The notes below the pieces were generated by a model. That model had not been told where the DNA came from, did no database searches, and saw only the letters and a program-made list of their open reading frames with translations. From NCBI GenBank assembly GCA_043228905.1, contig JBHGNT010000017.1, forward strand, positions 11,036,001 to 11,100,000: DNA of 64,000 nucleotides, read 5' to 3'. Each line of letters opens with the position of its first letter. The first letter of the stretch is position 1. The translations under genes were made by a program, and so were the position numbers. Below, piece by piece: positions 2,287 to 48,121 of this stretch. The stretch comes from Azolla caroliniana (taxonomy: Eukaryota > Plantae > Polypodiophyta).

Positions 2287-2897
2287 TGTTGGGAATCGAT
2301 GCTTCGATTCACCTTCTTCGCCCGGCCACAACCGAGTAATCGCGGATCAATGCAGCAGAAAATAGAAACCAAAAGAGAGAAACACACGAGTACACAGGGA
2401 TTAACGTGGAAAACCCTAGATGGGAAAAACCACGGGAGTACAAGACTCCAAACAACACTATACAAGAGAAGTATACAATGACGAGCTCCAAGGCGACGAC
2501 CTTGAGCTCGCTGTCCTCGCCACAGGCGGCGGAAATACACAGAGGCGTCGTCCTCTTCCTCTCTCGCGCTCTATCTCTCACTCTGTCTCACGGCTGCTCC
2601 CTCTTCACTCCTCTTGAGTGGAAAAACAGAAAAATGATAAGCAACTACAAAACAGTTTGCCCTAAGTCATATTTATACATATATGACTTTGGGGCTATTT
2701 ACAACTATAGCCTCAGGGGCCCATAGCAGACATATTCACGGATATGTCCCTGCATTCGGATCGCTCTCCGGGTACATTCGTCATCCGGCTCCGAAGTCGG
2801 GGTCTTCATCATCCGGTTCCGAAAAACCGAAACCGGGCTTGTCGGCATTCATCTCCGACATCCGACCATCCCATCCGAAGGGACCGTAATCCCAACA
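2287..2897 (-). repeat. 3' LTR of Tork-like copia
   Basis: Direct repeat of 7011-7621, TG...CA ends, adjacent to PPT. Confidence 0.98.
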
Positions 2898-2909
2898 AAC
2901 TCCCCCTTC
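2898..2909 (-). promoter_or_regulatory. Polypurine tract (GAAGGGGGAGTT on - strand)
   Basis: Purine run directly upstream of the 3' LTR, overlapping the ORF stop. Confidence 0.93.
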
Positions 2910-5900
2910 ACTTCGGCATGGGATGTCTTTCCAATCCGATCCTCTTCCGGCATGCTTCCAGCTTGTCGGGTGTGAGCACCTTGGTCAGCATATCCGATCC
3001 GTTCTCGTCCGTGTGGATCTTTGTCAGCACGAACTCCTTGTCTTCTATCCTTTCCCGGATCCAGTGATATCTTCGCTGGATGTGCTTCGTCCGGGAGTGA
3101 TAGGCCGCGTTCTTCGCAAGGTGGATTGCACTCTGACTGTCGCAGTAGAGTCGGTACTCCTCCTGCCGGATACCGAGCTCCCTAATGAAGTCCTTCATCC
3201 ATATTATTTCCTTGCCGGCTTCAACAGCTGCCATGTACTCCGCCTCCGTGGTTGACAACGCAACCGTCTTCTGCAGCCTCGACTGCCACGAAACAGCTCC
3301 CCCTGCATATGTCATCACATACCCTGATGTGGACCGGCTGGTATCTGCATCAGCCGACATATCCGAATCGGTGAAGCCGTCGAGTTCGGGCTTACCGGAG
3401 CCGAATCGGAGGCACACGTTTGCCGTGCCCTTCAGGTATCGGAGTATCCACTTGGCCGCGTTCCAATGCTCTTTGCCGGGATTGCTCATGTACCGGCTCA
3501 CCACTCCGACTGCATATCCTATGTCCGGTCTCGTACACACCATGGCGTACATCAAGCTCCCGACGGCTGAGGCATACGGCACTTTCATCATATCCTCCTT
3601 TTCAGCCTTTGTCTTGGGACTTTGCTTGCTGGACAGCTTGCAGTTTGCCGGGAGGGTCGATCCGACCGGTCTTGCTTCCGACATGTTGAACCGGTGAAGC
3701 ACCTTCGTCACGTACTTCTCCTGTGACAGCCACAACTGCTTCTTGCTCCGGTCCCGGATGATGTGCATCCCTAGTATTTGTCTCGCCGGACCCAGGTCCT
3801 TCATTGAGAAGGTTCGGTGAAGAGCCTTCTTCAGCATCCGGATCTTGACCTGGTCCCGTCCGACGATCAACATGTCGTCCACGTACAGGAGGAGTACTAG
3901 AAAGTCTCCTCCTTCGAACTTCTTCACAAACACGCAGTGGTCGGACTGCGTTTTGAGGTACCCTTCGTCGGTCATGAAGGAGTCGAACTTCCGGTACCAT
4001 TGCCGGGGAGCCTGCTTCAGTCCGTAAAGGCTCTTCTTCAACCGGCATACCAGGTGCTCCTTCCCTTTCTTCTCGAATCCTTCCGGTTGCTGCATGTAGA
4101 TCTCTTCATCGAGGTCACCGTGAAGGAATGCCGTCTTCACGTCCATCTGTTCTACCTCGAGGTCCATGCTTGCCGCTATGTTCAGCACCGTCCGGATGGA
4201 GGTCATCTTCACTACCGGGGCAAATATCTCGTCGAAGTCGACGCCCTTCTTCTGCTGAAACCCCTTCACCACGATCCTGGCTTTGTATCTCGGGGGGTTT
4301 CCGGCATCTCCCGGTTTCAGCTTGAACACCCACTTGTTTCGAAGTGCCCGCTTTCCTTTCGGCAACTCCACAAGTTCATATGTGTGGTTCTCATGCAGGG
4401 AATCCATTTCGTCCTGCATGGCACTCAACCACTTGCGGCTCTGGGTGTCATGTTTTGCTTCTTCAAAGCTCTCCGGCTCCCCCTCGTCGGTTAGCAGCAC
4501 GTGCTCTGGTTCCGGAAATCTCCGGGGGGCCCTTCTCTCTCTTAGAGGATATCTCCGTTCTGGAGCTTCGGTAACCGGTTCTTCCGATTCTTCTTCATCT
4601 GAATCCATTTCGGGATCGGGGCCGGTTCCGGTATCGTTTTCATCTTCTTCGGCCGGTTCTGTTTCTTCACCGTCTTCGGCCGGATCCTCGAGTGCTAACC
4701 GGTCCCTTGCCGGTCGGGACTGCTCCTTGTAGAGTTGATCCTCACCGGTCGACTTGGAGCTATTTACCTTCTTCTCCGACTCCCAGTCGGCGAGTGTCTT
4801 GTCCTCCATGAAGATGATGTCTCGACTCCTGAATATCTTCTTGTCGACCGGGTCCCATACTCGGTAGCCGAACTCGTCATCGCCGTAACCGAGGAATATG
4901 CATGGCCGGGTCTTTGGATCTAGCTTTCCTCTCCGGTCCTTTGCCACATGCACGTATGCGAGACACCCGAACACCTTCAGATGCCGGTAGGACACTTCCT
5001 TACCGGTCCACACTTTCTGCGGCGTGTCTCCGTCCAAAGGTACTGAGGGTGATCTGTTTATCACGTATGTCGCCGTCGACATTGCCTCAGCCCAAAACCC
5101 CTTGGGTAATTTCGCATGCGCCAGCATACTCCGGACCCTCTCCATTATGGTCCGGTTCATCTTCTCGGCCAGCCCGTTCAGTTCCGGCGTCTTCGGCACA
5201 GTAAACTCGAGTCGGATTCCCTTCGAGCGACAGTACTCCTGGAACTGCCCCCGGTATTCCCCTCCGTTATCCGCTCGTATCGCTTTCAGCTCCTTGCCGG
5301 ATTCCCTTTCCACTCTCGCGTGGAGTTCTTTGAAGACGCACAACACTTGGTCCTTTGTCTTCATCGGTGCCGTCCACAGTTTTCGGCTATGATCATCGAT
5401 GAATGTTACGAAGTACTGGGCTCCGCCATGTGACTTCGTTTCTACCTGACACACGTCAGTGTGCACCAACTCCAATGGTGCGCTACGTCTCGTCGGTGGC
5501 TTTGAGTGGAAGGAGGTTCGGTTCTGCTTACCGGCCAGGCAATTGGTGCACTTCTCCAGGTGCACATGCTTCACTGGGATAAGGTTGTCTTCTGCAAGCC
5601 TCTTCATCCCCTTCTCACTCATGTGGCACAGTCTCTTGTGCCACAGCTCACCGGCAGTGTCGGCTGCCACATTCAGCTCTTCCGGACATAACCAGGCATT
5701 CATCAGGTACAGTGTGTTGACTTTCCGGGCCCGAGCCACTATCAGGCTCCCCTTGCTGAACTTCATTACGCCCTTCCGGATGCTACCTGTGTAGCCTTCA
5801 TCGTCTAGCCTCCCGGCCGAAATCAGGTTCAATCGAACCTCCGGAACGTGTCGGACATCCTTCAACAGCATTTTGCATCCGGTCGGGGTTGTCAACCACA

Positions 5901-6981
5901 CGTCTCCTATGCCGGAAATCCGGCACGTACCTTCATTTCCCATCCGAACACAGCCATGCTCACCGGCTGTGTAGGATGAGAAGTATCTTCTCTCCGGGGT
6001 CAGGTGGAACGATGCTCCGGAATCGACCACCCAGGTCGTCTCATCGCCGGCAACATTTAGCTCACCTTCTTCGGTGATGAGCATGATTTCTTCCTCACTT
6101 GCCGCGAGTGCCGTTGTTCCTTTCCGGTCCTGCCCTCGCCGATCCGAACCTCTCCGGTCCGTGGCTCCCCGGTATGCACCGTTTCTCTCCGGTGACTTCT
6201 TCGAATCGGTGTCGTCGGCTCCGTTGTCTTTTCGGTAATGCCGACAATTCTTTCGAAAGTGCCCCGGCTTCCCACAGTGGAAGCATGTGGGCCTTCCTCT
6301 TGACTGCGACCGGGTCCCCGACTTCTCCCGTCTTTGCGGACTCCGGTTCCATTGCCTTCCCCGATCCGATTCGGTAAGCAGCGCCTTCGAGTCGGAGGCC
6401 GGTTCTTTATCTCTCCGACGCGCTTCTTCGTTCAAAATACTTGTCTTTACCGTTTGCAAGGACAAGTTATCTTCTGTGCAGGAGGTGCTGAGAGTCACCA
6501 CCAAGTTCTCCCAGCTTTCCGGCAATGTACACATCAGGATGATGGCTTGCATTGCATCCTCCAACGGGAACTTGATCGCCGCAAGCTGATTCACGAATCC
6601 CATGAACGTGCTTACGTGTTCCACCATACTCTCGCCGTCCCGGTACTTGAGATTCACTATCTTCCTCATCAGGGAGGTCCGGTTCAACGCATTCTTCCTC
6701 TCGTAGAGGCCCGACAGCTTCTTCCACATCTCATATGCGTTGGTGTCGTTTGCCACATGTTGTAGGACGCTTACATCGACATATTGTCGGATCGTCGCTA
6801 CGGCTTTCCGGTTCAGGAGCTTCCACTCCGACTCAAGTACCCCTTTCGGTATTTCCGACCTGTCAATCGGTTCGTACAGGTCCCGAACAATCAGAAGATC
6901 CTCCATCTTGATCTTCCAGTCGGCGTAATTCTGTGCATTCAGCACCATCATCCCCGGCTGCCCGCTGCCGCCGCCTTCCAT
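2908..6981 (-). CDS. gag-pol: Copia Gag-Pol polyprotein (gag, CCHC knuckle, PR, INT, RT, RNase H), 1357 aa
   Basis: First ATG at 6981; CFHCGKPGHFRKNC knuckle, WVVDSGAS protease, WHKRLCH..CTNC zinc finger, HTDVC/DNGGEY/AEKMNRT DDE, LLYVDDML RT, DSDM..TEAEY..CDSQSA..SDMLTK RNase H; no stops. Confidence 0.97.
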   Translation of the reverse strand: MEGGGSGQPGMMVLNAQNYADWKIKMEDLLIVRDLYEPIDRSEIPKGVLESEWKLLNRKAVATIRQYVDVSVLQHVANDTNAYEMWKKLSGLYERKNALNRTSLMRKIVNLKYRDGESMVEHVSTFMGFVNQLAAIKFPLEDAMQAIILMCTLPESWENLVVTLSTSCTEDNLSLQTVKTSILNEEARRRDKEPASDSKALLTESDRGRQWNRSPQRREKSGTRSQSRGRPTCFHCGKPGHFRKNCRHYRKDNGADDTDSKKSPERNGAYRGATDRRGSDRRGQDRKGTTALAASEEEIMLITEEGELNVAGDETTWVVDSGASFHLTPERRYFSSYTAGEHGCVRMGNEGTCRISGIGDVWLTTPTGCKMLLKDVRHVPEVRLNLISAGRLDDEGYTGSIRKGVMKFSKGSLIVARARKVNTLYLMNAWLCPEELNVAADTAGELWHKRLCHMSEKGMKRLAEDNLIPVKHVHLEKCTNCLAGKQNRTSFHSKPPTRRSAPLELVHTDVCQVETKSHGGAQYFVTFIDDHSRKLWTAPMKTKDQVLCVFKELHARVERESGKELKAIRADNGGEYRGQFQEYCRSKGIRLEFTVPKTPELNGLAEKMNRTIMERVRSMLAHAKLPKGFWAEAMSTATYVINRSPSVPLDGDTPQKVWTGKEVSYRHLKVFGCLAYVHVAKDRRGKLDPKTRPCIFLGYGDDEFGYRVWDPVDKKIFRSRDIIFMEDKTLADWESEKKVNSSKSTGEDQLYKEQSRPARDRLALEDPAEDGEETEPAEEDENDTGTGPDPEMDSDEEESEEPVTEAPERRYPLRERRAPRRFPEPEHVLLTDEGEPESFEEAKHDTQSRKWLSAMQDEMDSLHENHTYELVELPKGKRALRNKWVFKLKPGDAGNPPRYKARIVVKGFQQKKGVDFDEIFAPVVKMTSIRTVLNIAASMDLEVEQMDVKTAFLHGDLDEEIYMQQPEGFEKKGKEHLVCRLKKSLYGLKQAPRQWYRKFDSFMTDEGYLKTQSDHCVFVKKFEGGDFLVLLLYVDDMLIVGRDQVKIRMLKKALHRTFSMKDLGPARQILGMHIIRDRSKKQLWLSQEKYVTKVLHRFNMSEARPVGSTLPANCKLSSKQSPKTKAEKEDMMKVPYASAVGSLMYAMVCTRPDIGYAVGVVSRYMSNPGKEHWNAAKWILRYLKGTANVCLRFGSGKPELDGFTDSDMSADADTSRSTSGYVMTYAGGAVSWQSRLQKTVALSTTEAEYMAAVEAGKEIIWMKDFIRELGIRQEEYRLYCDSQSAIHLAKNAAYHSRTKHIQRRYHWIRERIEDKEFVLTKIHTDENGSDMLTKVLTPDKLEACRKRIGLERHPMPK

Positions 6982-6995
6982 TTTCTGCAACAGTC

Positions 6996-7007
6996 GCTCT
7001 GATACCA
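6996..7007 (-). promoter_or_regulatory. Primer binding site for tRNA-iMet (TGGTATCAGAGC)
   Basis: Exact canonical plant iMet PBS, 3 nt inside the 5' LTR. Confidence 0.97.
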
Positions 7008-7010
7008 GTT

Positions 7011-7621
7011 TGTTGGGAATCGATGCTTCGATTCACCTTCTTCGCCCGGCCACAACCGAGTAATCGCGGATCAATGCAGCAGAAAATAGAAACCAAAAGA
7101 GAGAAACACACGAGTACACAGGGATTAACGTGGAAAACCCTAGATGGGAAAAACCACGGGAGTACAAGACTCCAAACAACACTATACAAGAGAAGTATAC
7201 AATGACGAGCTCCAAGGCGACGACCTTGAGCTCGCTGTCCTCGCCACAGGCGGCGGAAATACACAGAGGCGTCGTCCTCTTCCTCTCTCGCGCTCTATCT
7301 CTCACTCTGTCTCACGGCTGCTCCCTCTTCACTCCTCTTGAGTGGAAAAACAGAAAAATGATAAGCAACTACAAAACAGTTTGCCCTAAGTCATATTTAT
7401 ACATATATGACTTTGGGGCTATTTACAACTATAGCCTCAGGGGCCCATAGCAGACATATTCACGGATATGTCCCTGCATTCGGATCGCTCTCCGGGTACA
7501 TTCGTCATCCGGCTCCGAAGTCGGGGTCTTCATCATCCGGTTCCGAAAAACCGAAACCGGGCTTGTCGGCATTCATCTCCGACATCCGACCATCCCATCC
7601 GAAGGGACCGTAATCCCAACA
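7011..7621 (-). repeat. 5' LTR of Tork-like copia
   Basis: Direct repeat of 2287-2897, next to the PBS. Confidence 0.98.
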
Positions 7622-7626
7622 CCATC

Positions 7627-7959
7627 AAGGATCCGATTTCCCTTTACTGCGACAACATGAGCAGTATCTATCTGGTTCGGAACCCGGTGTTCCACGCGCG
7701 AACAAAGCACATCGAAGTGCACTATCACTTCATCCGAGAGCGTGTTCTAGCTTGCGATGTCGACCTACAACACATAAGCACCAATCTTCAAACGACCGAC
7801 ATCTTCACTAAAGCCTTAGGAGCCGACAAGCTATGGCAATTCATGACCAATCTCGGACTGACGATCCCTGACCTGCCAAGCTTGAGGGGGAGTACTAAAG
7901 ACATTACGCAACAACGCGTGGATTCCGCAAACCGCACACACTACGCAATAACGCGTTGA
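7627..7959 (+). pseudogene. pol: copia RNase H C-terminal part (continues from 2286)
   Basis: KDPISLYCDNMSSIYLVRNPVFHARTKHIEVHYHFIRERV...DIFTKAL resumes after the TSD. Confidence 0.92.
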
Positions 7960-11295: not shown

Positions 11296-11483
11296 CTAAT
11301 TTCTTGTTATTTCAGTACCTAATTAACCACATCAACCAGTTTTCGAATAAACATGTACGATAATACCACACACATATATTCCTTTAACAAAACAATACAA
11401 TACTAAGAAAGACAACCATACCAACAGGCTAATATAAAAGTCAAGTTTAAGGTGTTATCCACAAGTGCCGAACATTAGTGGCA

Positions 11484-12350
11484 GAAGATTATCATTCTAT
11501 TAAGATCGAGAAATTGACAATAATAATCATGGTGATGATGAAGACATAATATTTTCAACATAAATAAATCTTAAAGTTTCCATTTCAAAGGATAATCAAT
11601 AAATATTAAACCCTTAAAAAAATAGTTCTGAAATAACCAATGCTTAAAAAAAGTTCTGGAAAAAACAGTTCTGAAGCCATACCGAGTGAAGGAGACGACA
11701 TACCGAGGGAAGATTATCATTCTATTAAGATCTAGAACTTGACAATAATAATCATGATGATGATGAAGACATTATCTTTTTAGCATAAATAAATCTTCAA
11801 CTTTCCATTTCAAAGGATAATCAATAAATATTAAACCTTAAAAAACAGTTCTGAAATAACCAATGCTTAAAAAATAGTTTTGAATACATACCGAGGGAAG
11901 ATTATCATTCTATTAAGATCTAGAACTTGACAATAATAATCATGATGATGATGAAGACATTATCTTTTCAGCATAAATAAGTCTTCAAGTTTCCATTTCA
12001 AAGGATAATCAATAAATATTAAACCTTAAAAAACAGTTTTGAAATAACCAATGCTTAAAAAACAGTTCTAAAGACATACCGAGGGAAGGAGACGACATAC
12101 CGAGGGAAGATTATCATTCTATTAAGATCTAGAACTTGACAATAATAATCATGATGATGATGATGACATTATCTTTTTAGCATAAATAACTCTTCAAGTT
12201 TCTATTTCAAAGGATAATCAATAAATATTAAACCTTAAAAATAGTTTTGAAATAACCAATGCTTAAAAAACAGTTCTGAAGACATACCGAGGGAAGGAGA
12301 CGACATGCCAAGGGAAGAAGAAGACATACCGGGGGAAGGAGAAGACATAG
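11484..12350. repeat. Tandem repeat, 4 units of ~190-225 bp with variable 21-bp subrepeat
   Basis: GAAGATTATCATTCTATTAAGATC recurs at 11484, 11709, 11897 and 12106; GACATACCGAGGGAAGGAGAC subunits vary in number. Confidence 0.92.
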
Positions 12351-14603: not shown

Positions 14604-15036
14604 TGTCATGATATGGCAAGACTCGAACCCATGACCTTATGTTATATGGGTCGAGCTCTTGACAATTATACTATCTTTTGTAATACGTACGATATTATTT
14701 TCATTTAAGTTTTATTATAGGAAATTAATGTATATTCCAGATTTCTCGAGAACATTCTAGAAGCTTCAGGATTACTCCTGAGAACACTATAAAAGAAGGT
14801 ACTAGGCATTATGTTGAACCAAATTGGTTCAACGCCAGTCTTAAGCCTCTTAGCCACTTTGTACTTATCCTTCACATAATATATTAGCTATTATCATCAT
14901 CTCTCTCTCTCTCTCATCCTCACTATCTCTCTCTCCTCTTCTCTCTTTCTCTCTCGGGAATCTTTCGCAGTCCCGTCCTCTTAGTACTAATAGTACTTCT
15001 CTTCTTTAGTACTAATTCTCTCTCTGCTTTAGTACT

Positions 15037-15407
15037 TGTTGTATGTATGGCTGGACTAGCCGCAACACAGGTGTCTATCCGACACTTCTCCAAAGGGGTG
15101 GTAGGGATAGAATGTTAATACACGCGTATGATAATTACACTTAAGCACAGACGAAGACAAGATTAATCAGCATAAGCAAAACTATATTAATTCTTCGCCC
15201 CTTCATTACAAAACATCGGATCCTTTTATAGGCATCCGGCCAGATTACAATCGGTGCTCGGTAGGCAACCGTTAACCGAAACCGAATCGGTTCGGATCCG
15301 GATCGGTTACAACTACCGGATCCGTCCCTCCTAATAATTCTATTCCTATTTCTATATTTATCCGATCCGACCTTGCTTTCCCATTTGCCTTCTCTGACCG
15401 GCCAACA
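15037..15407 (-). repeat. 3' LTR of element A
   Basis: Direct repeat of 24745-25115; TGTTG...CAACA. Confidence 0.97.
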
Positions 15408-15409
15408 CA

Positions 15410-15450
15410 TGGCACGCCCGTGGGAAAGTGCATTGCACTTCGAACCCACA
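15410..15450 (+). promoter_or_regulatory. Inverted tRNA-Arg PBS-like module at the PPT position (element A)
   Basis: TGGCACGCCCGTGGGAA-AGTGCATTGCACT-TCGAACCCACA, 2 nt from the LTR; no purine tract. Confidence 0.85.
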
Positions 15451-15457
15451 GCCGGCT

Positions 15458-18373
15458 TCAGTCTTCCTCCAAATTATCAGGCAAACTCCGCTCCGAGGTT
15501 TCAAGTGTTGTTTTGCCTGTGCCGTCTCCGACGTCCGATTGGATTGGCTGCCTTTTCGCATCTTGCTGCTCCGACTCTGCTTGTACCGGTGGTACCGATG
15601 TTTCTTCTGTATCCTGTCCGGGTCTGTCCTGCTCCACCTCCGTTCCGTTCCCGGTATCGCTCTCTCCGGTTTCCACTGGTTGTGTCCTTTCCTCCCCGGA
15701 TTCGGTACTTCTCTGTCTCCACTCTGCATCATCCCCGGCATCAACCTGCTCTTGCTCCGGAAGTTCTTCCTCGGGTAATTCTTGTCGGGGTACATTGTTG
15801 GTTGGGTCTTCTTCAGCCGGTCGCTCGCCCTCACTAATGGAGATCGGCGTTGTGTGTCCCTCGGCTTCCTGTCGCAGTCGGTCCTTCTCGTACCCTTCCA
15901 ATTCTAGTTGGGTTTCGAGCTGTCCGTCATCCAACCTCTCTACTAACCCTCGGATTTCCTTGAGATGCTCTTCTGCTAGAGCATAGAAATCCTCCGACAG
16001 TTCTTCCCGGATGTTGACGATACTTTCTTCGTCCATTTTATAGAACCCATCTCCGTTTTTCTTCCGATTTTCTGCATCAGCTCGGAGTATCTGCAGTTCA
16101 GCTGCCTGTTGTGCCCATTCCCTCCAGAGCTTCTCCGTGCTTTCATTTATGCTGGCCTGAGCTCGGGTACTCCAACTTGACATGATGAACTTAATTCGGC
16201 CAACCCCTGCTTTAGCCTGTTCCGAAGCTGCTTGTTTTTCCTTCCTTATCCGTTTGATGATGTCGGCCATTAACTGAGCTTGAGCTTCAGAGTCGACTTT
16301 TTGCTTGTCACAGGTACTCCGCCATTTGTTGATTTCGAAAGTCAACTTCACTTTCTCCTCATTCCTGCTCTTTGTCAGCTCCCCTACTTTCTGCCGAAGT
16401 ACTTCCATCTCCTTTCTTTGTTCCGACGTCAAGGTCTTCTCCGCCGATACTTCCTCCCTTGCTTTGGACAATTCCAAGCGGTTTTCCTTGAGCTGCTCTT
16501 TCAGCTTCTCTATCTGTCGGTCGTACGTTGCTGCCTGATTCTTGATGTCCGACGTGGCCTGTTTATAATCCTTACATAGTCTGTCGAATTCCTCCGTCTT
16601 CTGTTTTAGGCGTCGGTTCGCCTGAGCTCGCAACTGATCATCCCGGTCCTTTTGTTGTCGGAGTTCCTCTCGCAACCGCTCAATTTCCTGCTCCATTCGT
16701 CGGCGCAGCCTATCTTTTTCCTTTTGCAGTGTCCCGTTTTCTTCTTGTAGTCGGTCATTGGTGGCTTTGCTTCGGCGAAGGCCTTCCTCCATTCGCCGTC
16801 TGTCGTCTTCTACCAACTTCCGCTGTTCTCTTTCGTTATCTCTCAATGCCTCCTGAGCCTATAATTCTTCTTTCAAAGTTGCTATTAACTTCTCGGTCTC
16901 AGGGCCGGTTTGCAAGGCCCTCTCCGTTTCTGGTTCGGCTTGCTTTTCTGATGTCCCGACCGGCTCGGTGCCATCTTGTGCTTGTCGGCTGCCTTCTTTT
17001 GCCTGTGCTAGCTCTTCTTGCAGCTCATGTAATTGTGCCCGGAGCATGACCATATCCTTAGTCATCGTCCTAGTCACTTCTTCTCTTTGCTCCTCCTCTT
17101 TCTCCATCTGGTCTGCTACTCCCGACAACTGCCCTGACAACCACCTTAGCCATTGTGCCTTTGTTCTGCCTTCGTTGGTGTCAGCAGGCGTGCCTAGCTC
17201 TGGCTGTTTTTCCGGCTGTTTCTCCGGCCTCTTCTCTTGTTCCGGCGCTTGTTCCTTTCTTTGTTCTTCGAACTCCGCCGCCGTCGGTTCCGGTACTGCC
17301 GTCTCTGGTGCAGACGGACCTTCATCCTGTGTCGCTTCTGTACCGGTTACTGGAGGCGGTTCTTTTGCCCGTTGCTGAGTTCCGTCCGCTGTTGGGGTTA
17401 GTCTTGTCGCTCGTTTCTCCTTTCCTTGCCTGGGTGGTAGTATTAACATCGGTTCGGATGAGTCTTCCTCTGTTTCAGCGTCCTCCGTCGGTGCCACTAT
17501 TGGTTCCTTTACTGGTACCGGTTCCGATTCGAGCGTTACTGGTTCGGTGTCGGTTTGCCTCTTGCTGGTCTTCTTTGCCAGCTTCTCCTTGCCTTTTTCC
17601 GCCTTTTTCTTCTTCGTTGTCGGTTGCTGTTGCTGTTTCTGTGGCTGCCATGATGGGCCTTCCTCCCTTTGCTGTCGGGATGAGTCTTCTTCCCGCGGTT
17701 GTCGAGATGAGCCTTCTTTCCGCGGCTGTCGGGATGATCCTTCTTCCCGCGGCGCTTCTTCTTCCTGTGTCCATCCTGGAGTGTGTTTCTCTAGGATTCG
17801 TCGGCGCTTCATGGTTTGCTTCGGGGTAGTCTCCTGCCGACTTCTTTGCTTGTGCTTGATGGGGGACACCGGTGGGACCAACACTGTTAACCATTGGGAT
17901 ATTCCGGCCCATGGCTTCTTCCCTTCCACTAAGTGCTTGATCGCCTCTTTCAGTCCTTCGGTGATGAAATGGAGCCAGTCCACCTGCAGGCCTTCGAATG
18001 TCGCGATGACGATCGCTGCTCGGTATTTGGCTATGGCTGCCGGACGAGGGTTCACGAACCCGTACTCCATCAGGGCGCGGGCCACCTCTCCGAACAGCAG
18101 GTTCTCTCCGCCCTGTGTGCGATACGCCTTGCTGCTAAGGGAGTATTCGCCGAAATACTCGAAGAATATTTGGCTCGAGGGTAGCTCTATCGTCTGAAGT
18201 CCTCCCTCCAAAATCCCTGTGAGCGCTTGTACCGCTCCTTCAGTGACCTCTGCTAAGTCCACCGCTGTTGCCGCCTGCTCTGGTTCCTTGTGTGGTGGAG
18301 CGTCAGCGACCCGCAGCAGCCCTCCTAATCCGTTCTCCGTCAGCCATTGTCGCGCTCCGTCCGACAGTGCCAT
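15458..18373 (-). CDS. Element A accessory ORF (~971 codons, one in-frame TAG at 16859-16861): globular N-domain, acidic/Pro linker, coiled coil, conserved C-motif
   Basis: ORFs 16859-18625 and 15458-16846 are in frame (EEL*AQEALRD versus DELAAQEALRS in element D). Start inferred from homology (MALSDGARQWL). Confidence 0.85.
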
Positions 18374-18616
18374 CGCTTCTTCTTCGTCTGCTGCTGCCTG
18401 TGGTCTGAGGTCGGGGTGTAGGTGTTCTGCGCGTCGGATCTTGCTGTCTTGGGCCTGCGTTTGCTTGTGGGAAAATTCGTAAAAAGTGAACCCTTCCCCG
18501 GTTCTTCCTTTATATAGTGGCGTTTCCCTCGAGCCGCCTTTTCCTGTTTTTCGCGCATGCGTATCTTCTGCCATAATTAGCATCTCACTTTTTAATTTCG
18601 GCGTCTGCACGTCCTC

Positions 18617-18714
18617 GAATAGCATGTCCTATTTTTGGCGCCTGCGCATGCTCTGTCATGAATAGCATGTCCTATTTTTGGCGCCTGCGCATGCTCTGTC
18701 ATGAATAGCATGTC
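18617..18714. repeat. 43-bp tandem duplication (x2.3) in the pol-accessory ORF spacer
   Basis: GAATAGCATGTCCTATTTTTGGCGCCTGCGCATGCTCTGTCAT at 18617 and 18660. Confidence 0.93.
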
Positions 18715-18971: not shown

Positions 18972-21900
18972 TCATTGTTCGGTTCCCCCCGATGTGTTCG
19001 GGTCGGTGCGCACTGTTGTCGGTTCCTCGTCGTTGTTACGCGTCGGTGTCGGTTCCTCGCCATTCGGGTTTTCCGGGTCTTGCTTGAAGGGGTTAGCTGG
19101 CATGTGCCCCTTATACGGTTTTAGGCGAAACCCATTTGCCCATTTGCCCACAACTTCTCCTGACAACGTCCCGAGCTGGTAAGACCCATTGTACTCCTTT
19201 GTGATCCAGAATGGTCCGGTCCATCGAAATCGCAATTTCCCCGGCATGTTCCCCATCCGTGTCTGGAACAGCAATACTGGTTTCCCGACTTCGAATTCCT
19301 TTTCGTTACCGCGCCGATGTCGGTCTACAAAGGCTTTCCTCCTCCTTTGCTCTAGTTCTAGCTGAAGCAGGCTGGCTATTCGATTCTCTTCCAGTTCCAA
19401 CAGCATCGCCAGCCGGATTCGTTCGGATTCCTTCTCGCTTAACCGCTCCTTAACCTGTATTCTTAAGCTAGGAATTTGGAATTCTACTGGCATGACTGCT
19501 TCCAAGCCGAATGCCAGTCGGAACGGGGTCGTCCGGATGCTAGTCTTGTACGCCGTTCGGTACGCCCACAACACGCTCTGCAACTTCGTGTGCCAGTCGG
19601 TCCGGTTCTCATTGACGATTTTTCTAAGGATGTTCTGTAGCGTTTTATTCGTTGATTCCGCTAATCCGTTGGCTTGAGGGTAGTAGGGAGTGCTTCGTTT
19701 GTGTACTACCGCATAGAATGAGGTCAAACTTTCCACCACCTGCCCGAGGAAATGTCCTCCCTGGTCACTGATCAGCTCAATCGGGCATCCGTACCGACAC
19801 CATATGCATTCATATAAAAATTTGGCCGTGGACGCCGCCGTGTTGTCCCGTAGTGCCTTTGCTTCTACCCATTTGGTGCAGTAGTCGGTAGCCACTATTA
19901 TATACCGATTTCCGGTTCGCATTGCCGGTGGCTTGAAGGGGCCGACAAAGTCTAAGCCCCACTTTTGGAATGGTTCTAATGGCAAGACCGGGTGATGTGG
20001 CATCCGGGCCTGCTCCGTGGGTTGGCCCAGTCGTTGACACAGCTCGCATTCCCTGCTATACTTAACGGCATCTCTCATGGTAGTCGGCCACCATAGTCCG
20101 CTCTGCCATATCTTCCGGGCTGTTGTTTCGCCGGCATAATGCCCGCCTGCAATTCCACAGTGGGCTTCCCTCAGGATCAGATCCTTTTCATCGCTCCGCA
20201 CTGCTCGCCTCCATACGCCATCTGCCCCCTTGTGATAGAGGGTGTCTCCTACCAAGCAGAAATGTCTGCTCCGTACTGCCATCCTCTTCCGTTCGTCTCG
20301 GTCCAGGTTTTCCGGGGGAACTCCGGTGCTCAGGAACTGATGCATTTCGGTTAACCATTTGTCTTCGTCCGCTACTGTGGTCTCCGTTGCCGGTGCCGTC
20401 GTGACCTTAAACAGCTCGGCGTCGGGAAATTCGTCCTGTACGCCGTCCCCTGATTCTCCGGATTCTAGTCTGCTCAGGTAGTCTGCTACCGCATGCTGCA
20501 CCCCGGGTCGGTGGAAAATGTCGAATTCGAATTCCTGTAATAGCAGCGTCCACCGTGCGAGTTTTCCTGTCAGGGCTGCCTTTGAGACCAGGTAGAGTAG
20601 TGCTGAGTGGTCAACGTGGAAAGAGAACTTTCGTCCGAGCAGATAGTGCCTGTACTTTGTGACACTGTACACCATTCCTAATGCCTCTCGTTCCGTTGTA
20701 GAGTAGTTCCGTTCGGCTTTCGAGAGTTTCCTACTTGCGTAGTACACCGGCCGATACCATTTCGGTTCCGTGAGTTGCATCAAAACACTGCCGATTGCTA
20801 CGTCCGACGCGTCGACGAAGACGTGAAAGCTTTTACTCCAGTCCGGCGGCTGCACCACCGGAGCTTGTGACAGCATGACCTTCAACGCTTGGTAGGCTGC
20901 CTCCTCCGTTTCTGTCCATTGGAAAGGTACTCTATGTACAGCAGCGTGCAATGGTGTCGCAAAGTCGGCAAGGTGCCGTAACATCCGACTATGCCACCTT
21001 ATTTGACCAAGGAATCGGCTTAAAGCCTTTGCGCTATTCGGTGCCGGTGCGTCGAGAATTGCTTTTACCTTATCCGGATCTACCGCGATTCCTTCCCGAC
21101 TCACCACGTGGCCTAACAAGTTGCCGCTTGCGACTCCAAAGACGCACTTAGCCGGGTTCAGACTTAATCGGTACTCGCGGCACTTTTCTAAGCATAGTCG
21201 TAGGTGATCGAGATGCTCTCCGTGTCGGCTGTAGACGGCGAAATCGTCTAGGAAGACCTGCATAAAACCGGGAATAAAATCACCGAAGATTTCCATAATT
21301 ATCCTTTGAAATGTTGCAGGGGCTGTCTTTAATCCGAACATCATCACGACGGCGACGAACACTCCCCATTCCGTCACGAACGCTGTTTTCTCTTGGTCGG
21401 CCGGGTTCATTCGGATTTGGTTGTAGCCGCTGAATCCGTCCAGGAAGCTGTAAACTTCGTGGCCGGCCACCGCATCTAGCACTCCGTCCGTGAATGGTAG
21501 TGGAAAAGCGTCGGTCACTGTCGCGGCATTTAGTTTCCTGTAGTCCACACATACCCGGATTTTGCCGTTCTTTTTCGGGACCACCACTATCGGGCTTAGC
21601 CAGGTTGCCTGCTTGACTGGTCGGATAAATCCGACCCGGAGAAGCTTGTCAATTTCCTCCTTCACCTTTGCCGCATAGTTTGGATTCATCCGGTACCGAC
21701 GTTGAGCGATGGGTTTCGCGTCAGTACTTAGATGAATTTGGTGCTGGTAGAGCTGGGGGTCCAACCCTCGCATGTCTTCGTATGACCATGCGAACACGTC
21801 CTTGAAATCCGTTAACAGTGCTACCATTGCCTGTTTTTCCTCCTTCGGCAATTCCTTCGCGACTTTTACCGGTCGGGGTTGTTCTGTTGTGCCGAGGTCC

Positions 21901-24692
21901 ACCTCTTCCAGCTGGGATGCTTTCACCCTTTGGGATATCGTCATTTCTCTTTCTAGGGCTTCCTGTGCTTGGCGTAGTTCCCGGATCGCCACTTTGTCCG
22001 GCTCGTCCGGCATTGTGATGTACGGCTCTACTGCTGCCGTGATATCCACCTCAAAAAGTGGGACGATCTGTGGGTGTTCCTCGAGGTACCGATCAACTTC
22101 CTCATCCGGTAAGCCCTCCAACATGTTGATGCTTTCGGCATATAAAGGGGTTGCCTCCTTGCTAGTGAGCACCCGTGGTTGCGTGGCTACCCGTACCTTT
22201 GTTTTCCCTCGTCGGAACGTGATCATATTCTTTTGCCAGTTTTGCTTGATAAGCGCCGTTCGCAGCCATGGTCGTCCTAACAGTAGGGGATATGCGCCTT
22301 GTACATTCAGCTCTAGTACCACGGCCGATATACGGAATACGTGGCCTCCTATTGTTACTTCCAGGTCCCGGATAAGACCCGTTGGTCGGACTGAGCTTGT
22401 ATCCGCCATGCGTAACCAGAAGGGGCATGGTTCCCACTCCTGGATGCCTGGGTCGTCGCATGTCTGTCGACTAATGACGTTCACCCCGGAGCCTCCGTCA
22501 ATAATTGTTCCTGGAATCTCCTTTCCTTTGACGATTGTCGTGATTGCTGGGCTACTGGTATCAACCACCGCTGGGCCTTCCTCCGGGTTGGAGAAAAATG
22601 CCGGTGCCGGCGTCGGCGTCGGTTTGCTCACGGCGGCTTGTAAGTCTGCTGTAAACCGCGGCACCAACTGTAGTAACCGTGCCAACGGCAGCACGATCTG
22701 ACAATCTTGTAGTGCTTGCCATGTCGGGTTTTCTCCTGGCTATACGATTTCCTCCTCCCTTGGCATATTTTGGTTTCTTACTTCCGCCGCACCTTGTTCG
22801 TTGGCTTCTTTGATCCATTGTGCCGCTTGTTTTCTGATTGCTTCCTGGGCTTCCCATTCGGCGGCCTTCCCTTTCGACCGCGTGGTAACCTGCTGTACTT
22901 CGGCTGTCACCATGTTGACTGCTGGCTGCTTGTCGGCTGTTTTGCTTGGGCATTGATTACTGTAATGCCCTTCTTTTCGGCAGTAATAACAATACACCCT
23001 GTGCGTGTTGCTGGATTCTCCTTTTTCCCATGTTTGGGGGAGGGGCATTCCCCGGCGGTTGTCCTCGGTTTTTTGGTTCTCCGGTGCCGCTACTGGTTTG
23101 TCATTCCTTGTTGCCTCCCGACGCTCCTCTCTACGGAAGAATCCACGCCTTTGGTTCCGTCGGAAATTCCGGTTCCCTGGCCGCCTTTCTTCTCTGCGTC
23201 GCTCGTATTCCGGGGATTCGTCTCGGTCGTACCGGTCCCGGGGGTAGCTATCCCTTCGGTTCTCCTCTCGGTCGTACCGGTCCCGGGGGTAGCTATCCCT
23301 TCGGTTCTCCTCTCGGTCATAGCTGTCGCGTCTTCTATCGGGGTATCTGTCGCCGCGTTCTCGTCGGTAGCGGTCGTCCCTCCGGAATCGATCCTCTTCC
23401 GGGTCCCGATTGCGCGGTTCTATGTGTCGGACCGGTGCCGCTTGTCGAGTTAACAGGTTATACTCGCATTGGTTCGTTGTGTGGGCGCGAGAATTGCATA
23501 TCATGCACTGTGCGCGCAGGGTGCAGTCAACGGTCGAGTGCCCCGAATTTAGGCATGTTGTGCATTGTAGGGCTTGTCGGAACCGGAGGTCCTCCTCCTT
23601 CGGAAGCGCCTGGTGTAACGCCCCCATCGGCAAGAAGGGGCTCGTGTTGTCCATTTCCAGGACCCGATCAATGACTTGGTCCATTGTGCTGGTGCTGAAA
23701 TCGATGATTCCACACATCGCTCGAAGTGGGTCTTTTAACGCAGCCAAAAAGACTGCCTTGGCCTCCTCTTCGGGTGGTGCTCTTGCTAATTGACTGTGCA
23801 AGGTCTGGAAACGAATGATAAATTGTGGGACCGTCTCGTTTTCTCCCTGCCGAGTGGTGTAGAATTGTCCGACCAATTCCCTTTGTTCCACTCGTCTATG
23901 AAACAAGCGTAAAAACTGGGTTTTCAATGCCTCGAACGTGGCGAAGCTGCCTGGTAAGTGCTTGTCGTGCCACCGGGCCGCCGGTCCTTCTAATGTCATG
24001 CCGAATTCGGCGACTTTGGATCGGTCGGCCTCGGGCTCCGTCAGTCTCTGGGACACGTGGTTGGCTTCCCATGTTCGCAGGAATGCATACACATGTGCCT
24101 CTCCGTCGGGCTCATCCCGATACTTTGGGTACGGATACGGCATCGTGTCGTCCCACTGATTCTCCTGCGTTGGTTCCTCCGATGTCGGTCTCCGCTCCTG
24201 CGGTTCCTCCGCAGGTGGTGTTGGTATCCGCTCCTGCGGTTCCTCCGCGGGTGGTGTTGATAACCGCTCCTCCCTCCTCGGCGATTGCCGGTCACCGAAC
24301 TCCAGAGTTAGTTCCTCCTCTGGCTCCGATGTTGCTGAGTGATCCGACTCAAAGGGGTTGTTCTCGTGGCTGCTTCTATAGCGGGATCCCACGCTTTCCC
24401 CGCTATCCGAATCCGCCTCTAATGTTGCAAATGCCGCTGCGTCCCCGTCGCCGCCAGCGAGAGTCTGTAGTAGTGTCTCCGCTTCTTGGAGGCTGGTTAT
24501 GCTACTGCCTTCGTCGGAAGCTTGTAGAACCTGGAACTGCAGTGCGTCTTCTGCGATTTGCCGAAGCGTTTTTGAGAATGACCGATCGCGCCGGATCTCG
24601 TCGACGGCTTGCTGCAGGGCTTCCCGTCGTCGCTGCCGTTCGGCGTGGCGTCTCCCTCTTTCGGTGATGTGGTCGTTATTTTGTCTAGACAT
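18972..24692 (-). CDS. gag-pol: Element A Gag-Pol (three CCHC knuckles, PR, RT, RNase H, INT), one in-frame TAG at 22740-22742
   Basis: IIDGGSGVN protease; RVCVDYRKLN, FLDGFSGYNQI, VFLDDF RT; VDASD/TEREAL/VDH/VADYLSR RNase H; H..H..CELC, GLDFVGP, SDQGGHF, NGLAES, WTGPF integrase. The gag and pol ORFs share one frame; no extra archaeal-type RNase H seen. Confidence 0.95.
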
Positions 24693-24719
24693 CCATCCCC
24701 CGGTTGTCCTCTGCACTCT

Positions 24720-24738
24720 GCAGGAATCGTGGTCGCCA
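24720..24738 (-). promoter_or_regulatory. 5' PBS of element A (TGGCGACCACG, tRNA-Arg type)
   Basis: Starts with TGG 6 nt inside the 5' LTR; the 19-mer is identical in element D (48103-48121). Confidence 0.85.
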
Positions 24739-24744
24739 AAATAG

Positions 24745-25115
24745 TGTTGTATGTATGGCTGGACTAGCCGCAACACAGGTGTCTATCCGACACTTCTCCA
24801 AAGGGGTGGTAGGGATAGAATGTTAATACACGCGTATGATAATTACACTTAAGCACAGACGAAGACAAGATTAATCAGCATAAGCAAAACTATATTAATT
24901 CTTCGCCCCTTCATTACAAAACATCGGATCCTTTTATAGGCATCCGGCCAGATTACAATCGGTGCTCGGTAGGCAACCGTTAACCGAAACCGAATCGGTT
25001 CGGATCCGGATCGGTTACAACTACCGGATCCGTCCCTCCTAATAATTCTATTCCTATTTCTATATTTATCCGATCCGACCTTGCTTTCCCATTTGCCTTC
25101 TCTGACCGGCCAACA
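24745..25115 (-). repeat. 5' LTR of element A
   Basis: Direct repeat of 15037-15407. Confidence 0.97.
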
Positions 25116-25734
25116 GTACTATTCCTGATAGTTTGAACCAGTTTTCCTCCTTTGGCCTACTTGTCGTTCTCCTTCATCCTCCTACCCTTTTCCCTATACT
25201 ATGGCTACTCTTAGCGCCCAAGAATATCAATCCGTTTTCTCCGAGCTACAGTGCCTAAAAGAAAAATTTGTTGCCTTGGAACAAGAAAACCAATTGTTAC
25301 CGATTAGGAACACGGTCTGCAGTCAGTCCTTCGACCTAGACCTACAAGTGATTGTGAAACAACGAATGGTGGCGTCTATGCGTAATACGTAGTGGAATGT
25401 TCCCCGTAACCTAGCAGCGTATAAGGGCGATGGCTACAACCGACTCCTTAGCAATGGTTACACTCACGTTCTTACACTCTCAAGTGTTCCAGACACACAG
25501 TAGATTAGTCGTAGCTATACACAAATATTCAGAGAAGATAGAATTCTATTACGATACACTTCTTTACATTCCCAAAATACACGCCCCTCTAACAGAGGTT
25601 TTCTACCCTTTATATACGCATGGTCTATTTAGCCGTTAACGCTTCCTGCGTGAACCGTTACATGCGTTATGATCTTATATTATTTCTTATTCCTACGCTC
25701 TTGTCCGTCGATTACTATTCCGGCGGACAACACC

Positions 25735-25775
25735 TGGCACGCTTATGGGACAGTGCCCTGGCACGTCGGACCCAT
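25735..25775 (+). promoter_or_regulatory. Inverted tRNA-Arg PBS-like module at the PPT position (element B)
   Basis: TGGCACGCTTATGGGAC-AGTGCCCTGGCACG-TCGGACCCAT, 2 nt from the LTR. Confidence 0.78.
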
Positions 25776-25779
25776 CCTG

Positions 25780-28545
25780 TTAATCTTCTTCCAAAATGAC
25801 CTGGATGTTTGGCTCTGCTACGGTGTCTGCGTCCGGAGGCGACGTAGGGCCCGTAGGTGCATCGTGGTGTGGTTCCCTTGTTTGGTCGGAATGGCTTCTC
25901 CCGGTGTCGCAGTCGTCATGTGTGGGCGGTCCGGGTATGGTGGGCTCTTCTTGAGCTAGGGGGTTGGGCTCCGCCGTCGTCGTGCTTGCGGTCGGCCGCG
26001 ACTCTGTCTCAATCGTTACTTCCTCCGTGGTGTCAGTCGTCGTTGTACGCTCCGGGGAGTGGGGTTGCGATTCCGCCTGGCCCGAAACGTTCTCCATGTG
26101 GTCCGCCGATAGCGTGGGCTCTTGCGGATGGGGCTCCTCTTGGGCAGCGATTTCGCTATTTGGTACTGTGGGGGACTCCGCTCGTCGGTCCGCGCTGTTC
26201 ACCGTTGTTGTAATTTTTGGTGATCTAGCCTAAGGTTCCTCTTCTTCAGTTGTGCCCGGAATTGGCGTCGCACTGGATTCCTCATTTGTTCGCGTGTTGC
26301 CGGCTTGTGTGATCTGGTGAAATAGCTCCTCCTGGCTTTCACCAAAATCATGTAAGAGCTGCGTGAGTTCTTCGGAATGTTGGTTCGCTAGCGCATGATA
26401 GTCTTGTGCTAGGTCCTCGCGTATGGCCGCAATGCTCTCCTCATTTAGTTTATAGAAACCTCGGCCGTCTTTTCGCCGGTTCTCCCAGTCCGCACGATAC
26501 GCGTGCAATTCCGCTGCTTGGGTTGCCCTCACCATCCATCGTTTGTCCAACGCCATTTTCAATTGTGTTGTGAACCTCTCCCGATTTGTATATAGAAAGA
26601 TACGCACGTTGTCTATGATGGACTGGCAACGGTTGCGTGCGTCCTCCACCGACTTCTTGAGGTTTGCAATTTCTTGCTGCCTAACCGCTGCCGCTTCTTC
26701 GTACGTGGTCTTCAGGCCCGCCCACAGCTGGGATTCCTTTGCATGTTGTTCTTCTAATCTCCCCATTTCATTGTTTAGGCGGATTTTGAGTTGATGCCTT
26801 CTTTCCTGTTCGACCACCAGCTCTTCGTCGAACCATACCTTCTTTTTCTCCAATAAGGCCTGGAGTCCCGCAATTGCTGCCTCCGATTTCTTCGCTTCAT
26901 CCTGTAATTGGGCATTTTTGTCTTTTGTCCGGATGTGTTGTACTACCTCTGTAGTGAGTTTCTCTTCAAGGGTTTTTACTGCCATCCGGCCGTTAGACCG
27001 GATCTCCTTTTCTCTGTCTGAGGATTGGCGCAGTTCAGCTCGAAGGTGGTCAATTTCCGATTCCGCTAGTTCCACGGCCCTTTTCGCTTTTGAGGCGATG
27101 ACGGTCTAAGCCTCAATTTCTTCCTTCAAAGCATCGATGGCGTGGCTTGGTGGCGGAGTTGCCTGTTGCGCCGTAGTCGCGTTAGATTCGAACTCCACGA
27201 TGCGTTCGCTGGCTCTTTGCAGCTCAGCTTGGGTCATTTTCACCTTCTTCCAGACATTCTTATTTTTAATGGCCATCTCCTTGGTGCCCGTGCTGACCTT
27301 TGCCAGTCCCCTATGGATTTCGACTAGGGTCGTGTTTAATGGGGGTAGCTCCATCCCCACTCGGCGTACACTGGCATTCCTCTTTCTGCCGACCCTGGCT
27401 AGCCGGTCCCCATCGTCGCTCTCCGCCGTTTGTGTTAGGGCGCACTCTATCATCAGGCGCTCCGCATGCTCATCGGCCATTCGTTGTGAGGCCTTTATCT
27501 GTTGTGTTGCCAGGAATTCCATAAGCTCAAAAGAGGTTCCGAATTGTAAGAGGGCGTTGAACTCATGGGTCATGTCCGGGATATTTGGATATGTCAAAAC
27601 CTCGCTTTCCGTCGTTAATACGGCTTTCCCTCATTGGGACTGGGTCGTAATGATCGGTCGTGGCTCCCGGATGATTTCGAAGGTGGTATTAGGCTCCTTA
27701 GTTGCGGAGCCATCGCCTTCGGTCGTTGTCTCTGCCGCCGTGGGGACGTCTTTGACCAATCCCCGCCCATCTTTCCCGTCCAATCTACGCCGTTTCGGTC
27801 TGGGGCTATCCTGTTGTGTTTCGGCGTCTGGCTCTGGGGCTGCTTCCGCGGAGCGTGCCGGTTGTTCCTCCTGCGTTGTCCATATGTCTAGCTGGGTGGG
27901 AGGTGTTGTCCACGTGTCTGGCTAGGCGGTTTGGGGTTCCTCTTCCCACTCTGGGGCAGCTAACTCCGCTAACCTACGCTTCGCAGATCGGGGCGGAGGC
28001 GTGGGTCGGCTGGGCTGCGGTGTCAGCAGGCCTCGGGGTGGGAATACCATCGTAAGGTACTGTTGGATGATCGGCTTGAGCTTTTTGCCTGCCTGATACG
28101 CATGCAGGCCTTCCCTTAACGCCGGCCTTGTGATGACCCCCCAATCAACCGCACACCCTTTAAAGGTATCGATAATGATACCCGCCTTCTGCTTGGGCAT
28201 CCCATATGCATTAACATGTGTGCAACCGACCTCTAACAGGAACTTGGCAACTTCACGGAAGAAGGGATCCAGGATCTGCTTCGTTCTACAAGCCTTGGAG
28301 GAGGAGAAATATGGCCCGAAATATCTTTGCAGCGCCTCTGCAGGATGGGTTTCGAAATGCTTTTCGCCTAGCAATTACAGGTCCAACTTTTTCTGGATGG
28401 AAGAGTTGGTGACCGTGTCGATGTTAAGCTTTCTGGCAATGTCCATGGCATCCGGGTGTGGGGGTGCCTCTGCGACCCGGATGTACCCATCCAGGCGTTT
28501 CTCCATGAGCCATCGGCATAAGGCAGTAGACATGAAGATCGACAT
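25780..28545 (-). pseudogene. Element B accessory ORF (broken)
   Basis: WLMEKRLDGYIRVAEAPPH, YFGPYFSSSKACRT, AVDWG, AAELHAYRADWENRRKDGRGFYKLNEESI; homologous to A and D. Confidence 0.85.
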
Positions 28546-28699
28546 CGATAGAGTAGGTTCGTGAGAAGGAGACTGGTGGTTGCGGTGGGTTGGAGCTCTG
28601 TGATAGGATGGAGGAGAAGGTGAAGGGGAGGAGCGATGGGAGCGCTGATAGTTAGAAGGTGGGTTTCTGTTTTGTGCAAAAGATTTTCTATTTCCATCT

Positions 28700-31600: not shown

Positions 31601-31720
31601 ATAGGTCGCTGAGGCGAGGCTTTTGCCGTGTGCATTCCTCTACCTAGTGTGTGACGGACCTTGTGATTGGCCGGTCTTGTCGTGTTGGTTCTCTGGGGCA
31701 TCTGCGACTAAACATCCATT
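28700..31720 (-). pseudogene. gag-pol: Element B gag-PR-(RT/RH/INT deleted) pseudogene
   Basis: Fragments CLNSGHSAVEC, WQALAGYEITL, DVFAWAHEDMKGLDP...IRPVKQA joined to PFRLVFGLEAMMPVEFQVPSL. Confidence 0.88.
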
Positions 31721-31751
31721 CGTCGTTGTTCGTCTGTGAGAAGACACAGAT

Positions 31752-31765
31752 CACCAAGCGTGCCA
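31752..31765 (-). promoter_or_regulatory. 5' PBS of element B (TGGCACGCTTGGTG, decayed tRNA-Arg(UCU)-type)
   Basis: TGG start 4 nt inside the 5' LTR; same family as the PBS at 58171-58183. Confidence 0.8.
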
Positions 31766-39105: not shown

Positions 39106-39143
39106 TGGCACGCCCGTGGGACAGTACCTTGTAGGTCGAACCC
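39106..39143 (+). promoter_or_regulatory. Inverted tRNA-Arg PBS-like module at the PPT position (element D)
   Basis: TGGCACGCCCGTGGGAC-AGTACCTTGTAGG-TCGAACCC, 2 nt from the LTR. Confidence 0.85.
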
Positions 39144-39155
39144 TTCTCGGCCCCT

Positions 39156-48074: not shown

Positions 48075-48102
48075 CCATTAAGCCATCGTTCGCTGCGAGA
48101 AA

Positions 48103-48121
48103 GCAGGAATCGTGGTCGCCA
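48103..48121 (-). promoter_or_regulatory. 5' PBS of element D (TGGCGACCACG)
   Basis: 6 nt inside the 5' LTR; identical to element A. Confidence 0.85.

Follow-up and report, generated by a model that had tools for sequence, protein, structure and literature searches.

How does an LTR retrotransposon start its second DNA strand when the sequence that normally primes it is absent? The plus strands of retroviruses and LTR retrotransposons start from a polypurine tract (PPT) (PMC3185511). The question is raised by an LTR retrotransposon, here referred to as element A, in a 64,000-nt stretch of the Azolla caroliniana contig JBHGNT010000017.1 (positions 11,036,001 to 11,100,000; below, this whole stretch is called the window, and all positions in it are counted from its first nucleotide). 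The original prediction, made from the sequence alone, was that element A carries, in place of a PPT, a second and inverted tRNA primer-binding module. Ty3 has been reviewed (PMC5371799), and a large plant survey lists tRNA-Arg among the primer-binding site (PBS) types of non-chromoviruses and is silent on missing PPTs and on ferns (PMC6317226). In the literature accessible to our search, whose coverage was incomplete, there was no account of PPT-less elements, of a second or inverted PBS, or of tRNA-primed plus strands. The second DNA strand of element A is thus probably started in a way for which we found no description.

Element A and the sequence in front of its 3′ LTR

The LTRs of element A (5′ LTR, 24745–25115, minus strand, TGTTGG...ACAACA, 371 nt; 3′ LTR, 15037–15407, minus strand) have TG...CA ends, are identical at 371 of 371 positions and are flanked by a 5-bp target-site duplication, AGTAC, at positions 25116–25120 and 15032–15036, which bears out the predicted young age of the element. 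The gag ORF (22740–24776, minus strand; Retrotrans_gag and zf-CCHC domains) precedes the pol ORF (18972–22694, minus strand; RVT_1, RT_RNaseH, Integrase_H2C2 and rve domains), and in the pol product RVT_1 occupies amino acids 372–530, RT_RNaseH 618–722 and the integrase 834–1006, which is the Ty3/gypsy order. Two extra minus-strand ORFs have no Pfam family: ORF3 (16859–18625, 588 amino acids), with homologous stretches in elements B and C described below, and ORF4 (15458–16846, 462 amino acids), whose stop codon lies 7 nt ahead of the module. We conclude that element A is an intact, young Ty3/gypsy LTR retrotransposon located on the minus strand.

The extra ORFs past the integrase (15458–18625 in A) are represented in element B by one fused 784-amino-acid ORF (39156–41510, minus strand), also without a Pfam family. 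Their products are 28–45% identical among A, B and C, and they are kept in other relatives too.

The original prediction had allowed for antisense transcripts of element A also being reverse-transcribed, in which case the module would simply be their ordinary PBS. Indeed, the plus strand of the window reads LTR-CA-TGG..., the canonical PBS arrangement. However, gag, the RT-RNaseH-integrase ORF, ORF3 and ORF4 alike are carried by the minus strand, gene order included, and an antisense genome would lack a PPT and encode nothing. The predicted minus-strand orientation of the element therefore stands, and the idea of antisense templates, which found no support, appears to us extremely improbable.

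A putative minus-strand PBS of element A, TGGCGACCACGA, is located at 24727–24738 (minus strand) and starts 6 nt past the LTR. It is present, with its conserved flank, also in element B, a TGG-initiated site being kept in A, B and relatives, and is similar to the PBS of a Riccia relative (L007), TGaCGACCATGCTGGGG. When the longer Riccia-type PBS TGaCGACCATGCTGGGGAATCC (L007, 7553–7580) is compared with the corresponding regions of A and B (24727–24745 and 48110–48128), the latter look like the same sequence minus ca. 7 nt (CTGGGGA). After this apparent loss, just 11 nt complementary to the tRNA are left in A and B.

Within the last 20 nt before the 3′ LTR of element A, the longest run of purines is 3 nt, versus 10 nt in both controls, a copia-like element of the same window (2279–7630) and the Riccia relative. 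The lack of a PPT at this place, part of the original prediction, is thus confirmed. A purine-rich run is found 45–60 nt upstream, at the end of ORF4, in most copies, and may be a displaced ancestral PPT.

Other repeats of the window were also inspected. The copia-like LTR element (2279–7630, minus strand) has a tRNA-iMet PBS, TGGTATCAGAGC, and a normal PPT, GAAGTGAAGGGGGAG, followed by tt and the LTR. An older LTR element on the plus strand (48571–53839; LTRs ca. 91% identical; near-iMet PBS TAGTATCAGAGC), in which no purine tract is evident ahead of the 3′ LTR (…GAACACCGTA), has probably decayed. Tandem repeats at 11473–12282 and 53957–54340, with units of ca. 188 nt and ca. 191 nt that are 74–96% identical, lie between transposon copies.

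The sequence that separates ORF4 from the 3′ LTR was confirmed as first read, on the minus strand from 15450 to 15408, and is made up of three parts and a spacer. Part 1, TGTGGGTTCGA (15440–15450, minus strand), is a copy of nt 48–58 of tRNA-Arg(UCU), i.e., the T-stem 5′ strand and the T-loop up to A58. Part 2, AGTGCAATGCACT (15427–15439, minus strand), is a 13-nt palindromic insert with the stem AGTGC/GCACT and is not tRNA-derived. Part 3, TTCCCACGGGCGTGCCA (15410–15426, minus strand), is a copy of nt 59–76 of the same tRNA, including CCA. The dinucleotide TG (15408–15409, minus strand) separates CCA from U3, the LTR starting at 15407.

The match to tRNA-Arg(UCU), part of the original prediction, was tested against real genes. 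Reference tRNAs were collected by a metagenome scan with a T-arm/acceptor pattern, which retrieved 120 loci. The majority of them are 73-nt tRNA-Arg(tct) genes according to ARAGORN, are followed by T runs and do not encode CCA (for example, L012, 6245–6317); these loci are ordinary Pol III genes. Compared with these real genes, part 1 of the module is identical at 11 of 11 positions (nt 48–58), and part 3 at 16 of 18 (nt 59–76), with a G59T change and one C of C65/C66 missing. The 13-nt insert is located exactly between A58 and G59. The predicted tRNA, the position of the hairpin between A58 and position 59 and the 2-nt offset of CCA from U3 were therefore all correct. In tRNAs, CCA is added post-transcriptionally. 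Since the module includes CCA while the genes do not, it was evidently copied from mature tRNA through reverse transcription.

With three or fewer mismatches to the module 17-mer, 0.1 matches are expected per window, while two were observed, each 2 nt before a 3′ LTR. A chance origin of the match is excluded. The module was also considered as a functional tRNA gene and rejected, since it contains the 3′ part alone, is interrupted and has neither a cloverleaf nor an anticodon; ARAGORN revealed no tRNA anywhere in the window, and the module gave no tRNA match when scanned against Rfam by E-value. A match of TGGCGACCA at position 37244 lies inside coding sequence and was discarded as fortuitous. 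The sequence TGGCACGCCC had been cited as a known Tat/Retand PBS; a literature string search for the PBS/module sequence returned chance matches alone.

Further copies, conservation and a second tRNA

Element B (38685–48546, minus strand) is a relative of A with a 3′ LTR at 38685–39103, LTRs identical at 417 of 419 positions and the target-site duplication AGAGA; its proteins are 82% (pol) and 49% (gag) identical to those of A. Its module (39104–39143, minus strand) contains tRNA nt 51–58, a 13-nt insert, nt 59–76 and TG, and matches the tRNA-Arg(UCU) genes at 8 of 8 positions (nt 51–58) and 17 of 18 positions (nt 59–76). Element C (25292–32209, minus strand) is old and has lost an internal segment. 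Its module (25733–25773, minus strand) has decayed by transitions and is followed by GG and the 3′ LTR (25292–25732).

Five diverged relatives (L001–L005) were retrieved from other assemblies. In three of them (L001–L003), homologues of ORF4 with 58–61% identity are followed by a near-identical module, so that the proposed check across family copies shows the module near-invariant where the adjacent ORF has diverged. The other two (L004 and L005; pol 54–56% identical to that of A) have more diverged modules that end in GTGCCA, followed by 2 nt and the LTR. The spacer between CCA and U3 is exactly 2 nt in 10 of the 10 module junctions examined (A, B, C, L001–L005 and two elements, L006 and L130, described below); by contrast, the PBS-to-LTR spacing ranges from 2 to 6 nt. 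Further loci either end short of the 3′ LTR (L008 and L009) or form a tandem array (L131). The 5′ LTRs are without the module, and it thus follows that the U3 border is set directly past it. Viral contigs contained no relatives of ORF4 of A or of the last ORF of B, and the module patterns gave in them either 0 matches or 4 chance matches in coding sequence.

In relatives C and E of the window, the minus-strand primer is tRNA-Arg(UCU), as judged by the type of the PBS, TGGCACGC...; in C, this PBS is located at 31749–31765. Long tRNA-Arg(UCU) copies with CCA are present at a PBS in L011, L050 and L086. Taken together, the PBS type of C and E and these read-through copies indicate that the tRNA is already in use as a primer within the clade.

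Element E itself is truncated (54272–58192, minus strand; pol 61–73% identical to that of A at the amino acid level), its 3′ part being missing from the window. Its PBS, which follows caatt, is TGGCACGCTCGG, of the tRNA-Arg(UCU) type. An E-type junction in which the tRNA copy reaches through the T-arm or to the anticodon loop was seen in L050, L086 and possibly L106, and such long copies at a PBS junction point to read-through of reverse transcriptase (RT) past A58.

Contigs of four other organisms were aligned to positions 15100–15900 at 80% likeness, and unitig depth was summed along this region. In three organisms (X10, X13 and X16), depth peaked over 15397–15450, being ca. 2–10 times that of adjacent LTR bins and 5–18 times that of the bin on the ORF4 side (15451–15477). 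In the fourth organism, contigs of up to 2.9 kb match 15397–15451 alone, and their flanks are unrelated and mutually different. The loop base at 15432 varies among copies, with G in the majority, and there is no other module variant among the better-supported differences listed. Hence, in contigs of these four organisms, no other part of the element is shared nearly as widely as the module.

The same design was found with another tRNA. L130, whose LTRs are 99.95% identical, and L006 encode pol proteins 45–46% identical to that of A and also lack a PPT. In both, the LTR is preceded by the 5′ half of a T-arm, a T-loop insert, the 3′ half of the T-stem, the 3′ strand of the acceptor, CCA and 2 nt, in this order. 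The T-loop insert clearly forms a hairpin in L006 and weakly in L130. The end of this module, (A/G)TGGTCGCCA, is the exact complement of the PBS found in A, B and the Riccia element; the module is thus built from another, putative tRNA, in parallel to PBS switching.

A pol tree was built from 21 rows picked from 494 matches and rooted at the midpoint for drawing alone. The elements with the tRNA-Arg(UCU) module form one clade (SH-aLRT 99), and its sister is the Riccia sorocarpa element, which has an ordinary PPT, AAAAAGGGGA. A separate clade (support of 100) unites the second-tRNA elements with a Marchantia polymorpha protein, P0086 (MARPO_0207s0002), while L133, from a third clade, carries no copy of a tRNA but a weak tract rich in purines. 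The nearest named relatives are liverwort elements. The Riccia sister element argues for an ordinary PPT as the ancestral state. Judging by the tree, the module design would either have arisen twice or have exchanged its tRNA. Either course suggests a function tied to being the 3′ end of a tRNA, much as PBS types switch.

One can ask if the module is merely a neutral scar, left by a past template switch of RT onto a tRNA and persisting only because the lineage that carries it was successful. Fossils of the kind that this explanation needs, i.e., read-through copies of tRNA-Arg(UCU), do occur in the host (L011, L050 and L086). Yet a scar is not expected to be the most widely shared segment across families whose flanks no longer align or to recur with a different tRNA, and young, multiplying elements that are free of a PPT still require a precise plus-strand origin at the very spot where the module is found. 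We therefore regard a neutral scar as very unlikely.

Priming of the plus strand

We infer, from the anatomy of the elements, the identity of the tRNA, the missing PPT, the conservation of the module and its recurrence with a second tRNA, both that the module may be a priming site and that a tRNA supplied in trans may be its primer. Our preferred reading is that the module acts as the plus-strand priming site in place of the PPT and that it is primed, most likely, by a host tRNA in trans; we consider the chances of this reading to be about even. On this model, minus-strand DNA would be copied through U3 and the module, and the RNA would then be cleared by RNase H. The DNA complement of the module would thereby become a PBS-like site facing U3 (CA, then TGGCACGCCC...). 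Co-packaged host tRNA-Arg(UCU), or an 18-nt 3′ fragment of it, would anneal to this site via nt 59–76, and in element A nt 48–58 would anneal too, with the 13-nt insert looped out opposite m1A58. The natural CCA-3′OH of the tRNA would then be extended into U3-R-U5. The first two bases made, TG, would be the pair that is later trimmed by integrase from the other strand. The two bases next to the LTR border are normally removed by integrase. Priming by tRNA would need only activities that the element already has, namely, tRNA packaging, annealing by the chaperone, elongation of an RNA primer along DNA and cleavage of the junction.

The module could have originated from a template switch at the U3/PPT border, in which RT jumped to a packaged tRNA at its 3′ end, faltered at m1A58 and went back to copying the genome. 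A stop of RT at m1A58 is known from plus-strand strong-stop synthesis (PMC1785368). Such a template switch would in one step yield a site able to bind the same tRNA. If the purine-rich run at the end of ORF4 is the displaced ancestral PPT, its location fits an origin by template switch at the PPT/U3 border. The same run could also act as a second, internal primer.

A counterpoint to priming by tRNA comes from the mismatches. One C is missing from the modules of A, B and C, and A has G59T in addition, relative to the tRNA, which means that a fragment of the element's own RNA pairs better with minus-strand DNA than the tRNA does. The primer might therefore be self-derived: RNase H would spare the module copy in genomic RNA, or cut exactly after CCA (or CCAUG), and this fragment would prime the plus strand in cis, as a PPT does, the likeness to tRNA reflecting adaptation of RT/RNase H to hybrids of a tRNA 3′ end with DNA. 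Position and the 2-nt offset fit such a primer equally well, and on minus-strand DNA the genomic RNA would pair at every position, while the tRNA would leave a bulge or mismatch in A and B. Further, the A-type module folds stably (−23 kcal/mol, z = −2.8), the hairpin immediately preceding the 3′ part, which is single-stranded. However, the stability of the hairpin is significant in the A type alone and is not significant in B, C and L004. RNase H would also have to recognize a non-purine sequence in which there is no RNA-DNA junction, and to do so for two unrelated tRNA sequences in two clades, while the exact CCA end at −2 in every lineage would be left without a reason. In addition, non-PPT RNA fragments are poor primers and are suppressed by NC (PMC2665208). 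Taking both sides together, we view a self-derived primer, including its account of the tRNA likeness, as a serious but rather unlikely alternative.

Comparison of A with B bears on the same choice. The tRNA-derived letters, including TTCGA of the T-loop, are kept between the two elements, while the insert is identical at 8 of 13 positions, with one compensatory pair. A model based on an RNA hairpin would leave TTCGA free to change, so its retention fits matching to the tRNA; the pattern of constraint between A and B thus agrees better with a need to match the tRNA than with a need to preserve a hairpin. Covariation in the T-stem and hairpin, a check that had been suggested at the outset, did yield two compensatory pairs, but the signal is only weakly above controls, since 25 of 500 shuffles do as well.

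It may also be that the module has a different job in the RNA, serving, as a mimic of tRNA, in packaging, protein binding, 3′ processing or cyclization, and that the plus strand is primed elsewhere, e.g., from the purine-rich run at the end of ORF4. The presence of this run 45–60 nt upstream in most copies is in line with such a scheme, and so is the module of C, which is complementary to C's own PBS, although 3% of shuffles do as well. In A and B, on the other hand, pairing of the module with the 5′ leader, as calculated by RNAduplex, is no better than that of shuffles, leaving cyclization through module-leader contacts in these two elements unsupported. Priming from an upstream site would place the module in U3 and hence in both LTRs, yet the LTRs do not contain it. 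Processing of the RNase P/Z type is unlikely, since the module lacks an acceptor 5′ strand and a cloverleaf and was recognized by neither ARAGORN nor Rfam. We therefore consider this alternative improbable.

Returning to priming by a host tRNA, the general form of the proposal is that element A and its relatives would use two host tRNAs, one annealed to RNA at the PBS to start the minus strand and another annealed to minus-strand DNA, at a mirror-image counterpart of the PBS, to start the plus strand. These LTR elements of non-seed plants would then have a mode of reverse transcription independent of a PPT, which either arose at least twice or switched its tRNA. We put it forward tentatively, with somewhat less than even confidence. 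If true, a large, recently active plant lineage would add a new way to start second-strand synthesis, whereas PPT priming is treated as universal (PMC3185511). Standard LTR annotation, which relies on a PBS and a PPT, mis-scores such elements, and the proposal would account for this too. The model with a tRNA primer makes a concrete prediction, i.e., tRNA-DNA junctions at the U3 border, and the Marchantia polymorpha relative in the second module-bearing clade means that a test may be possible in a model plant.

Comparison with known systems

Element A shares with canonical Ty3/gypsy elements (Metaviridae) the TG...CA LTRs, the 5-bp duplication, gag followed by RT-RNaseH-integrase, a tRNA-complementary PBS past the 5′ LTR (putative in A) and a primer ending 2 nt from the U3 border. 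Unlike them, it has no PPT at that border, where a sense copy of the 3′ part of a tRNA, ending in CCA, is found instead.

tRNA-related sequences near U3 have precedents. The bipartite PBS of Ty3 and the CYC5/CYC3 elements of Ty1 can pair with the tRNA that primes the minus strand or with the 5′ leader. Like the module, they are tRNA-related cis elements at the 3′ end of the genome near U3. The module differs in being tRNA-sense and, in A and B, in corresponding to a tRNA other than that of the PBS and in pairing with the leader no better than shuffles.

The 3′ tRNA-like structures of plant RNA viruses and of the Mauriceville retroplasmid are located at the very 3′ terminus, are full mimics of the acceptor and T arms and mark the ends of templates. 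What they have in common with the module is a tRNA-like 3′ part with CCA tied to initiation of genome copying, a role that for the module is proposed. In contrast to these structures, the module is internal, upstream of U3-R, and is without the acceptor 5′ strand. Helenus TRIMs are also LTR elements with a tRNA-derived sequence, but theirs lies within the LTR, has been taken as a Pol III promoter and coexists with a PBS and a PPT (PMC10886601), whereas the module is outside both LTRs, consists of the 3′ part with CCA alone and is found where the PPT is missing.

The module can also be compared with an ordinary PBS. Part 3 of the module corresponds to exactly the 18-nt stretch (nt 59–76) that RT copies from a primer tRNA, with the break at A58, and the minus-strand DNA complementary to the module would be a mirror-image PBS. 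Compared with an ordinary PBS, the module is found at the opposite end of the element and on the other strand, and it would serve the other DNA strand.
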